This document shows, piece by piece, positions 17,932-25,713 of a stretch of DNA of 64,000 nt; position 1 is the first letter of the stretch; every line of letters starts with the position of its first letter. Source of the stretch: Podarcis muralis (lineage: Eukaryota); NCBI RefSeq assembly GCF_964188315.1, contig NC_135667.1, forward strand, positions 12,028,001 through 12,092,000. The letters are read 5' to 3'. The notes under the pieces were generated by a model. That model saw only the letters and a program-made list of their open reading frames with translations. It did not search any database and was not told the origin of the DNA. Both the position numbers and the translations under genes were made by a program.

Positions 17932-18348
17932 CATCTCTTGGCTATAGCATGCTCTATGAGCCATTGTAGACAACACAGAACTCTCATATCTCAACAGGAT
18001 GCTGATCTCATCCCTGTGGTGGCAGGGTGTGATTGGGTTGGAAGGTTCCTTGGCAAACAGCCCTCTGGCAGGGCCTATCGTTGGGCACCCTCCTACACTG
18101 TTACAACCCATCTCATGGGACACCATTTTAACCTACAAGGCCTCAGAGAAACACTGCGTAAGAGGATTGTAGGAAATGAAAAGGACAGCTAGACAAGCAC
18201 TGAAGCTGCCTCTCTTACTGGAGAGCAAATGCACTGTAGTCGTGTTAGACTAGAGGTGTTTAGAACTGTGTCTATCCTAAAAGAAATGTCCTATCAGCCT
18301 TGAAGCTCACTGAGTTATCTTACACCAACAACTATGTCTCAGACTAAC

Positions 18349-18640
18349 CTTCTAGCAGTTCCCTCACTGCGAGAAGCAAAGTTACAGGGAACCAGGCAGA
18401 GGGCTTTCTTGGTAGTGGCTCCCACCCTGTGGAACACCCTCCCATCAGATGTCAAGGAAATAAACAACTATCTGACGTTTAGAAGACATCTGAAGGCAGT
18501 CCTGTTTAGGGAAGTTTTTAATGACTGATGTTTTAATGTATTTTTAATCTCTTGGTGGAAGCCACCCAGAGTTTCTGGGGAAACCCAGCCAGATGGGCGG
18601 GATATAATTTATAAATTATTATTGTTATATTATTATTATT
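18349..18640 (+). mobile_element. L2 LINE 3' fragment (same family as 20500-22238)
   Basis: Encodes [20 protein letters not shown]...FREVFND, near-identical to the C-terminus of the L2 ORF at 20601-21836, followed by a TTA-rich tail. Confidence 0.88.
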
Positions 18641-19059
18641 TTTCAATCCAACCATCTCTTATTAATATGTTTCTGGTGCTTATTAATGCGTTGTATGTTG
18701 AACACTGATTTGTTATATTTTCTTTGAAAGTGTAGTTATAAATATGCAAATAAAATAAATAAAATTAACACCCAGAATCTATGCATAGTTGTTCATTAGT
18801 TTGAAACCAGGTGTCAGATAATTTCATATAGGGATTTGAAGAGATAAATTTCCACTTAGTTTGGTTAGAGTATGATATTTTTCATTATTTCCTCCAAGCT
18901 GTTGAACTGACCACTATTTGTTAAGCATGAACATATCACTAGGTGTATCCTATTGTAACCTTTTGTCAGCACACACTACCCCTTTAGGATTCTGAACAAC
19001 CTTTTTGATAGAAGGCAGGTGACTATAAGCTGATAAGCTTTGGAAAAGTCTTCTCTTAC

Positions 19060-22600: not shown

Positions 22601-25600
22601 CTGGAATCCTAACAACTCTTGAGAATGAATTGCAAAGGATAAAGAGCCATCAATGAAGTTTGCTTTCCATCTACTTTGATGCCCAACTGATGAGAAGTCC
22701 ATCTGGGCTAACATAATCCAGACCTGTCCACTTAACTTCACTGGCATATTCAATTCAAACATGTAAAGTAGTGTTGTCAACATGATAATATTCTTAACAT
22801 CACCATGCAAGATAAACACATTGGCAGTGCTTTCCATTATAACTTGATTACCCTTATTCACCTCTTTCGACATATTTATAATGCCACTGGAAAAGGATAG
22901 GTTGGGGAATCTTACTATGAAGTCAAAGCAGATCCCATTCAAGGAAAAGAGGGGAAGTATGACATTTACAAATCTTTCTCCAGTCTCATCATTCTGAGAG
23001 CAAATTACTCCAATCCACGTCCAGCTAAAAAACAGCAACAATTGGAGGATTCCCCTACATTGATGGTTTTCATTTGGAAACATCCGGTGGAAGAAAACAG
23101 TTTCAGTTACATCATTTATTTTTGGAGTAGCACCATAGGTAAGCTAAGTAAAAGAAAAAGTGTGGCCGAGAAGGAGAGCATGAGCATTTATTTCCACATT
23201 AAATTATACAGATATGATTTCCTGATAACAGTGAAAGCAGAAAAAAAATTATGGTTGGCTGCACATGTCCCATATTAACAATGATTCCAGTCATACACTG
23301 TGTAAAAAGTCACCCATATGTTTTTACCTGAATGAAACAGATTCAATAACAAAGTTTCTACTATGGAGAACATGAAAATAGACCATTGCAGAACATGTAA
23401 CCACCAGGAGGGGTTCCTCCAAATAAGTCAGTGAATGGGAAAGTTCATATGACTGCAAGATGACCCAAGGTTGTAGAAAGAACTGTTTGACCATTGTTAA
23501 ACAGTAGCATATGTATACAGGATATTTTTTAAATAAAAAAATCATATGAATCAATAAACCTTTCCCCCTATTTCATGATTAACTGCAGCATGCAAGTTAT
23601 GCCTTTCTGCAGAGCTTTCCAAACTGTGTGTCACAATAGGTTAGTGAGTTGGCTGCATGGTGTAGGTGTGTTGCATGATATGTGTCCATATCTCTTATAA
23701 GAGGTTGGTTTTACCTCCGGTTTCCTAGTAAAACTGAATTATTTTGTTGCAAAATGATGAACTTTCCAACATGGAAAATTTGGAAAGCTCTGCCTTTCTG
23801 TTTGTATAATACAATTTTATATCCGCAAACCACAAAAAGAGATGTATTAATAAACTCTCATGAGCACATCTTACCTGGGGAATCTTGTAAATACACAGAT
23901 TAGCTGCCATGTGAACACCAACATCAAAACTGGGTCCCCCAATGACTGCTACGGGATTGTACTGGGTGTCACACTTGAAGTTAGGGATGCATTTTCCATG
24001 TGCAGAAAGAAGTTGCATTGAGGCATGATAAGTCCAGCTTGCACTGAAATAGCTATTGTAGATGTGGAATCCCAGGGTTATATTAGATAAGAGCTGCGGA
24101 TTGTCATTAATCTCTTTTACAGCAAATACCAAGGCTACAATGTGCTGGTAGCTCTGAAGCAACATTCTGCAAAGAAAGGCAAAGTGTGCATCATAGATCA
24201 TCTTCTCCAGAATAAGGCATTTATAAGTATGTATCATATCTATTTATTGTTACGAGCATTGGGTGCCTCCCTCTTTCTCTGCCAAGCGGTAGGAAGATTA
24301 AAGGGGGTTCCATGCCCTCACCAAGGGTCTGTGTTCCTTTGGAGAACTGAAATATGGAGGAGAATATCATAGCTTCTCATAAATATGGTTTATTCCCCTA
24401 TTTAAACCTTCAGTGTGCATGGAGGGAGTCCAGATCTTACAGCATGGTCATTTGCAGAGGGCATTGTCCCCCACAACACTGCAGCCTTGGAGTCCAAGGC
24501 ATCTTTCCAAGCCGGCCTTCAGCCAGCCACCCCAAGATGGACCCCAGTCCTTTTCTCTGCCTTCTTCTTCACAGCACACCTTGCTAAAAGCTCTCTTTTC
24601 CTGTCACCTCACACCCAGTTACCCGGACAACCTTCCAACACACACACACCCTGTCTTTGTTCACACCTCAGGGTTGGGGGACGGGGACGGGGACACAGTT
24701 CTCTTGTATTGCCCATGACCCTCAATGACCCTGTATTGTTCCTTAATGACCCTAACTTGGCCAGGTCGTTTTGCATAGGCTGGTTTAGGAATTTCTCTGC
24801 AGCTTGTATTTCTTGCTTCACATCCCAAATAATAAAAATCCTACCATTTAATAATTTTTGGGTTTAGTGGGGGTCCCCCCAAAATCTATAACAATACGTT
24901 TAATTAGTGTACTGCACAAAAATATTATATGGCCACAGTTCAGAGGCGAAGAAACACTTTTAAGGAAGGGGAATGAGTTTAATACTGTTCTTATTTATAT
25001 GCCTAATTTGCAGTTTCCAGAACAGTATATGGACTGAAAACTCGACATAATTTGAATTTTGAATATATCCAAATTTTATAGTGTACTTCTGTATCCAAGT
25101 AATGTGCATAAAAATGCATATACTAGCATAAATATTTTATAGTTTTATGATGTTTTAAATATATCAATGCACACTGTTTTTATATTTTTATGAGTTGGCA
25201 GTTTATAAGTATTCTTACAAATATATAAATACAATTAAAAATGCTTTTGTTGCTTTACAAAGTATCAAAATTGGATGCTCCTGTTTGATTTTAATAGGAG
25301 GGGGTACAGTGACCATTCATAAGGAAGAGTACAGAGCTGATATACTGGGAACCTAGATTGCATCCGTGGAAAGGTGGAATTGTAAAAAAAGAATTATTTT
25401 TACAGATGTACGGTATATCTGTTTTTTTAAAGAAGAAGAAGATGAAGAAGAAATGAAATTCTTACAAATAATCATTAAAGCGTTCATCAGAAGGATGTCG
25501 TTCAAAGGTTATTTCATCAGAAAAAATGTAGAACTGAGAAACGATGCCTGTAATGATGAGGTCTCCTGACTGATAATACTTGTGACGAACAGAGAGAGGG

Positions 25601-25713
25601 TAGTTGATGTTGCATTTATTAACAGGAGTATTGCATGACATCAGAGGCAGCAAAACTGATAGCCACACAAAGAACAATATCTTCACCCATGAAAATGTCT
25701 TACTGAATGTCAT
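19060..25713 (-). CDS. V2R-3: V2R ectodomain-only unit (exons 1-5 open, no 7TM exon 6); truncated gene or pseudogene
   Basis: Exons 25713 (or 25728)-25466, 24166-23875, 23143-22283, 19563-19336 and 19186-19060 are all open with GT-AG sites. No 7TM exon lies between 19059 and the V2R-2 ATG at 17806. Confidence 0.8.
19638..19686. repeat. (TTA)n microsatellite
   Basis: Read directly; it explains the poly-Ile pseudo-ORF 19625-19810. Confidence 0.95.
20500..22238 (-). mobile_element. 5'-truncated L2 LINE (RT ORF) in intron 3 of V2R-3
   Basis: ORF 21836-20601 has [33 protein letters not shown] and YADD. An upstream piece ([14 protein letters not shown]) is frameshifted near 21860. It has a (TAA)n tail and a TSD close to ATATAATA. 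It is absent at the paralogous site of V2R-4 (about 35550). Confidence 0.94.

Follow-up and report, generated by a model that had tools for sequence, protein, structure and literature searches.

The variable units of the protocadherin and UGT1A clusters are single first exons without splice acceptors, and no complete gene separates these units from the constant exons. Soluble ectodomain isoforms have been described for mGlu6, CRF2 and RXFP1 (PMC3477067), Lgr4-ED is a soluble form of a G-protein-coupled receptor (GPCR) ectodomain (PMC4154783), and SmGBP of Schistosoma is a flytrap-only protein (PMC3206071). For the vomeronasal type 2 receptors (V2Rs), "truncated" is a standard class for copies without loss-of-function mutations (Policarpo et al. 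2024, PMC10869828), and a study of rattlesnake V2Rs sets aside pseudogenes and orphaned exons (PMC12400810). The gene considered here, V2R-3, lies on the minus strand of a tandem V2R array in Podarcis muralis, within a 64-kb stretch of DNA (hereafter the window) that contains no N and is identical to part of OZ076966.1 (GCA_964188315.1), whose coordinates are obtained by adding 12,028,000 to the window position. Its five exons are open and encode a signal peptide and a ligand-binding ectodomain, and the exon for the seven-transmembrane (7TM) part is missing. Judging from the DNA, V2R-3 is most likely a "truncated" V2R of the ordinary sort, though a modest chance remains that it is functional, and the history to which we incline is that of a recently truncated relic of the tandem pair V2R-4/V2R-3, which may still be polymorphic.

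V2R-3 was searched exon by exon, its exons being joined only for translation and for estimates of the ratio of non-synonymous to synonymous substitution rates (dN/dS). The five exons hold 585 codons without a stop and have AG/GT at every internal junction, as an earlier note on this DNA had reported, and their sizes are those found in V2R-4, the intact sister gene. Exon 1 (25466..25713, 248 nt) carries the start codon and a signal peptide, visible in the translation as a hydrophobic N-terminus, and ends in a phase 2 donor. The start ATG is the one kept in V2R-4, where a further ATG that lies upstream of it in V2R-3 (25728) reads ATA. Exon 2 (23875..24166, 292 nt) begins the ANF_receptor domain (PF01094, E-value 1.5e-7), and exon 3 (22283..23143, 861 nt) provides the main part of the Venus flytrap (PF01094, E-value 8.9e-20), with 87% amino acid identity to V2R-4. 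Exon 4 (19336..19563, 228 nt) is 97.8% identical to its V2R-4 counterpart, and exon 5 (19060..19186, 127 nt), which ends in a phase 1 donor, contributes cysteines 1-6 of the nine-cysteine domain. There the domain breaks off: the Pfam match to NCD3G in exon 5 covers profile positions 1-40 of 54 only, and the remainder of NCD3G, with the last three cysteines, sits together with 7tm_3 in exon 6 of V2R-4 and of V2R-2, the gene directly downstream of V2R-3. A tblastn search with V2R-4 exon peptides found no remnant of exon 6 or 7tm_3 between 19060 and V2R-2 exon 1, in agreement with the earlier description of V2R-3 as a gene without a transmembrane exon. The encoded product has 17 cysteines, plus 1 in the tail that reading through the exon 5 donor would add.

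With no frameshift, no premature stop and no destroyed splice site in its retained exons, V2R-3 is not a pseudogene in the classical sense. It does not count as a functional V2R either, its nine-cysteine domain being incomplete and a 7tm_3 domain of its own absent. What it has are the properties of the "truncated" class (PMC10869828): no full-length coding sequence (CDS), no loss-of-function mutation, and a position away from any contig or scaffold edge, the surrounding record being a 59.6-Mb chromosome with no such edge near the locus. Like the truncated V2Rs and orphaned exons described elsewhere (PMC10869828, PMC12400810), V2R-3 is an incomplete copy in a tandem cluster, probably owed to rearrangement, whose remainder is free of loss-of-function mutations. 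It differs from them in that this remainder was demonstrably under selection for most of the time since duplication, which means that the truncation is young or that the fragment is still used. With a full-length V2R such as V2R-4, annotated as an 860-aa receptor (P0116), V2R-3 shares exon sizes and phases, 94% nucleotide identity over exons 1-5, and the ANF_receptor and NCD3G domains, whereas it lacks the 7tm_3 exon, has NCD3G cut at 40/54, and carries a 149-bp intron 4 and a long interspersed nuclear element (LINE) in intron 3.

Long purifying selection had been proposed for V2R-3 in the earlier note, and the comparison with V2R-4 bears this out. Across exons 1-5 the two genes differ by 6.0%, with no indel in 1756 nt, and their aligned non-coding blocks (3314 aligned nt) differ by 13.1%, with 10.6 small indels per kb. 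In exon 5 the differences number five, all of them synonymous and exactly those listed before (GTG/GTA, CCC/CCT, TCC/TCT, TAC/TAT and ATC/ATA), and there is no non-synonymous one. The dN/dS between V2R-3 and V2R-4 is 0.06-0.08 for exons 4-5, 0.6-0.94 for the flytrap exons 1-3, and 0.47-0.73 overall; the higher flytrap and overall values may stem from diversifying or from relaxed evolution in V2R-3 or in V2R-4. Neutral evolution since the duplication would predict 14.3 disabling hits from the non-coding rates (about 5 stops, 8 frameshifts and 1 splice-site change), and since none is seen, a neutral phase is compatible with the data at the 5% level if its share of the time elapsed after the duplication does not exceed about 21%. 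V2R-3 has clearly been under purifying selection for most of that time. Nor has it evolved faster than its intact sister: with the paralogs in the window as outgroups, derived amino acid changes at paralog-conserved sites number 8 in V2R-3 and 11 in V2R-4.

Gene conversion was considered as a cause of the likeness between exons 4 and 5 of the two genes and was rejected. The introns beside these exons are merely 76-86% identical between V2R-3 and V2R-4, and a broad conversion tract therefore does not account for the likeness of the exons.

How V2R-3 came to lack its last exon can be read in part from the edges of its homology to V2R-4. In intron 5 this homology stops at 18194, equivalent to V2R-4 position 30698 and 623 bp before V2R-4 exon 6 at 30075, which matches the earlier estimate of about 620 bp. 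At this breakpoint (18193..18194) the remnant of intron 5 (18194..19059, minus strand), which is block-wise homologous to V2R-4 30698-32721, is joined to V2R-2 upstream DNA, and 387 bp separate the breakpoint from the V2R-2 start codon (17806). The V2R-4 segment without a counterpart after V2R-3 (28297..30697, minus strand) starts within intron 5, takes in exon 6 (30075-29177) and extends 880 bp into the 3' flank, where an AATAAA stands at 28453. At the other end, the region upstream of V2R-3 (25714..28296, minus strand) is homologous to V2R-4 upstream DNA in the blocks 25714-26373 and 27621-28296 and delimits the duplicated unit on its 5' side. Corresponding positions in V2R-3 and V2R-4 are offset by 12.3-12.5 kb, from 18194/30698 to 28296/40627, and position 28296, at the end of this range, lies 880 bp past the V2R-4 stop codon. 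The repeat period therefore corresponds to the ectodomain part plus the exon 6 part, that is, to one whole gene unit, and the spacing of the copies thus suggests that the duplicated unit once included exon 6.

The present order of segments is A (V2R-4 exons 1-5), B (exon 6 and flank), A' (V2R-3) and D (V2R-2). A single tandem duplication was rejected as the entire history: its geometry cannot yield A-B-A'-D, and a second event, a deletion, is therefore needed.

Tandem duplication of the whole unit followed by a later deletion would be the simplest history. According to this view, a gene unit of about 12.4 kb, reaching from the promoter through all six exons into roughly 0.9 kb of 3' flank, would have been duplicated head to tail, and V2R-3 would then have been a normally working receptor gene for the greater part of its existence. 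The later deletion would have begun within intron 5 and taken the rest of that intron, exon 6 and the greater part of the spacer. The loss would amount to no less than 2.4 kb, with about 4 kb as the probable figure, since spacers elsewhere in the array measure 2.6-3.5 kb. In this way position 18194 in the intron 5 remnant would have come to lie next to V2R-2 upstream DNA, 387 bp short of the start codon of that gene, and the five exons would have stayed readable for want of time to collect disabling mutations. As it now stands, the V2R-3 locus cannot by itself make a receptor. Transcripts, if any, might end in the intron remnant and specify 621 aa in which the cysteine-rich domain is unfinished; alternatively, they might continue into V2R-2 and be spliced to its exon 2, where a stop would follow after two codons and nonsense-mediated decay would be the probable outcome. 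Gene structure, breakpoint, constraint and frame consequences are read from the sequence itself, whereas we infer from one genome which event came first, that the deletion is young and that the locus has no function today. There are also mild signs of decay specific to V2R-3, namely the LINE near the exon 3 donor, a promoter box with 5 mismatches, and the changes Y209C and S163F. Should V2R-3 be merely a young truncation, it would represent a clean and datable case of V2R loss by structural deletion and not by point mutations.

Two considerations weigh against a recent truncation of a gene that was formerly complete. If the time of the deletion is taken as uniform since duplication, the probability that all five exons are intact is about 0.07, and a fragment that is still useful is therefore favoured by about 14 to 1 before priors. 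It is possible, too, that V2R-3 is a one-step insertional copy of segment A alone that was never accompanied by exon 6; this is compatible with one genome, and conservation would then demand function. We nevertheless discount function because half a cysteine-rich domain gives a low prior, because neither of the products proposed for V2R-3 has a supporting feature, and because the large number of V2R loci in the genome allows such a case to be singled out. Structural debris is common among V2Rs, as illustrated by V2R-6 in the same window, by ectodomain-only squamate models and by orphaned exons. Dozens of squamate proteins annotated as "V2R", 280-500 aa long and with ANF_receptor as their only domain, came up in our exon 3 search alone.

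Searches for relatives of the locus gave the following results. At the protein level and exon by exon, no open reading frames (ORFs) from P. muralis read assemblies were found to match the V2R-3 locus: the exon 4 ORF query returned one unrelated 57% match and the exon 3 query only paralogs, at no more than 51%. A profile search built on separate exon rows and P0090 recovered the V2R-4 models P0116 and P0117 and no orthologue from another species, and in Zootoca no DNA like that of V2R-3 or V2R-4 lay within 10 kb at the locus of P0170, which is the nearest relative of V2R-5 and V2R-7.

The earlier note had placed three fates side by side: a soluble pheromone-binding ectodomain, a splice partner sharing the 7TM exon of another gene, and a very recent loss after long purifying selection. 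Constraint and copy spacing favour the last of these, whereas the secreted ectodomain is without support in the tail, in the poly(A) signals and in the cut NCD3G domain. That selection has kept V2R-3 as an ectodomain-only module, be it as a soluble protein of the vomeronasal organ that binds pheromones or dimerises, or as a second ligand-binding head on the V2R-2 membrane exon, strikes us from the sequence as unlikely, yet not so unlikely as to be passed over. If the fragment is still used in either way, it would constitute a new route to diversify pheromone detection, by a soluble binding domain or by a shared membrane exon.

The secreted version would require that V2R-3 be transcribed from a promoter of its own, that the transcript receive its poly(A) tail in the intron 5 remnant, and that the resulting soluble flytrap protein of 621 aa serve as a decoy or as a dimer partner of full-length V2Rs. 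We would give this little chance. The signal peptide and the intact flytrap ORF are what such a protein would have, the constraint signal fits it as well, and reading through the exon 5 donor (18950..19059, minus strand) adds a 36-aa tail with a stop codon at 18952-18950 and no hydrophobic end: its mean Kyte-Doolittle hydropathy is -0.47 and it contains no transmembrane-like stretch, as claimed at the outset. The intron block that holds the tail is, however, the most diverged of all (76.7% identity to V2R-4, 23% of positions differing, a Kimura two-parameter distance of 0.28), and the equivalent read-through in V2R-4 meets a stop after 6 codons, leaving the tail without a V2R-4 counterpart and unconserved. 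ATTAAA hexamers do occur 510-540 nt downstream of the exon 5 donor (18548, 18537 and 18522) and are the only poly(A)-like hexamers between V2R-3 and V2R-2, where AATAAA is absent; yet all three lie inside a repeat-element insert in the intron 5 remnant (18348..18642), a transposon that arrived later. The cysteine-rich domain is a further difficulty, for NCD3G stops at 40/54 and three of its nine cysteines are gone, and there would be little reason for strict selection on exon 5 if the domain it begins were never completed. Going by class C structures, we assume that a product without the last three cysteines would carry one unpaired cysteine.

Soluble isoforms of mGlu6, CRF2 and RXFP1, together with Lgr4-ED and SmGBP, are the obvious precedents, and the V2R-3 read-through would resemble them in combining a signal peptide and a ligand-binding domain without a heptahelical part (PMC3477067, PMC4154783, PMC3206071). 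Those forms, however, have been documented as transcripts or as proteins and mostly arise by splicing from genes that also make the full receptor, whereas the V2R-3 product is a prediction from DNA, and it would differ from them in its unconserved tail and its incomplete cysteine-rich domain.

We attach a still smaller chance to the idea that transcripts from the V2R-3 promoter use V2R-2 exons, so as to encode an 885-aa receptor or a tandem receptor with two ectodomains. The arithmetic of the frame is as first described: the phase 1 donor of V2R-3 exon 5 joins V2R-2 exon 6 (9056-8155, minus strand) in frame at 9056, giving an open 885-aa frame in which cysteines 7-9 and the 7TM part are restored. 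Exon 6 has the only phase 1 acceptor among the regular V2R-2 exons, which bears out the earlier statement that it is the next one downstream, but a cryptic AG at 17828/17827 is also in frame, and leads straight into the V2R-2 start codon so that the whole of V2R-2 would follow, for a total of 1461 aa. The constraint signal is compatible with a shared exon, and there is no canonical poly(A) signal between V2R-3 and V2R-2. What the sharing proposal had left aside is that V2R-2 exons 2-5 all have AG acceptors with pyrimidine tracts, so that reaching exon 6 would mean skipping four exons with good acceptors; the nearest regular acceptor is that of V2R-2 exon 2 at 16951, and the default join to it is out of frame and reads G-S-stop. 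V2R-2 itself (8155..17806, minus strand) is an intact gene of six exons and 869 aa (7tm_3 E-value 2.4e-86), complete with a conserved promoter box and a start codon of its own. The locus resembles the protocadherin and UGT1A clusters in having tandem ligand-side modules with their own promoters and compatible phases upstream of one membrane-side exon, but differs from them in that a complete gene with four acceptor-bearing exons intervenes, and competing acceptors are therefore present. If V2R-3 is truly spliced onto the V2R-2 membrane exon, vomeronasal receptors would gain their first described variable/constant arrangement.

The public annotation joins the two genes in just this manner, and has to be weighed with the same idea. 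In the NCBI annotation of OZ076966.1, V2R-3 is fused to V2R-2 in one 1424-aa product (window 8155-26784) with the Pfam order ANF_receptor, NCD3G, ANF_receptor, NCD3G, 7tm_3. Its CDS begins in a mini-exon (26749..26784, minus strand) that lies about 1 kb ahead of the V2R-3 ATG. Of the two ends, the start at 26784 is annotated, whereas we placed the 3' one at the nearest in-frame GT donor, 26749, with 26745 and 26732 as alternatives. Enumeration of in-frame exon chains of 1424-aa length yielded several solutions, so the linker between the two halves is not fixed. The fusion is probably a chaining artefact, and would be expected in any event because the predictor met a gene without a terminal exon. 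For annotators it carries a warning, as a fragment and its neighbour have been turned into one double-headed 1424-aa "receptor".

Least probable of all is an assembly error in which exon 6, present in the animal, was dropped from a tandem array of units 80-93% alike with numerous repeats, which would make V2R-3 an ordinary receptor and explain its five perfect exons without special pleading, but the window has no gap or N and exactly matches the chromosome-scale OZ076966.1, neither the junction nor the 387 bp beyond it belongs to sequence that recurs in the window, and other changes private to V2R-3, such as the shrunken intron 4 and the LINE insertion, look like real history.

Several features of V2R-3 deserve description in their own right. 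Intron 4 (19187..19335, minus strand) measures 149 bp, as against 1660 bp in V2R-4 (32849-34508), and the gap of about 1.5 kb stems either from a deletion in V2R-3 or from an insertion in V2R-4. The LINE reverse-transcriptase fragment in intron 3 (20386..22240, minus strand) is sense-oriented, begins about 40 bp past the exon 3 donor and is absent from V2R-4. It contains a 411-aa ORF (RVT_1, E-value 7.9e-31) and an overlapping 160-aa ORF about one frameshift away, a state by which it looks young. Its 3' end (20491-20781) resembles the short element at 18348-18642, that is, the insert in the intron 5 remnant, and another at 37917-38147. Two amino acid changes are private to V2R-3. Y209C, in exon 3, adds a cysteine at a site that is invariant among the paralogs in the window, and S163F, in exon 2, alters a GGPSS motif at a site conserved in the same paralogs. 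We take this motif to match the ligand-contacting serines of the metabotropic glutamate receptors (mGluRs).

Seven V2R genes or pieces were found in the window by tblastn with V2R-4 exon peptides. V2R-1 (minus strand) is partial and runs off the window; V2R-2, V2R-3 and V2R-4 follow on the minus strand, V2R-5 and V2R-6 on the plus strand, and V2R-7 again on the minus strand. A conserved V2R promoter box occurs 4 times in the window, where 0.04 occurrences would be expected by chance. It matches the consensus without mismatch in V2R-2 and V2R-5 and with 1 mismatch in V2R-6, and the corresponding boxes of V2R-4 (39009-39027, minus strand) and V2R-3 (about 25966-25984, minus strand) have 3 and 5 mismatches. 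The V2R-2 box (17913-17931) lies within the 387 bp of V2R-2 upstream DNA (17807..18193, minus strand) that have no homolog elsewhere in the window.

V2R-6 (52602-57685, plus strand) is a second structurally broken V2R in the window: it consists of exons 1, 5 and 6 only, exons 2-4 being missing, and its exon 1 sits in a 92-93% identical copy of the V2R-5 upstream and exon 1 region. V2R-5 and V2R-7 form an inverted duplication that is 90-93% identical and comprises exons 4-6 and 3' flank (47763-50723 versus 64000-60581). The annotated V2R-4 model P0116 starts at Met25 (38684) and not at the conserved ATG (38756), so that most of the predicted signal peptide is dropped. An older P. muralis model of V2R-4, P0117 (UniParc UPI0010A02B6A), differs from window 29180-37678 at about 1% of amino acids and reads through the exon 4 donor, and these differences point to allelic or lineage differences between the two assemblies.

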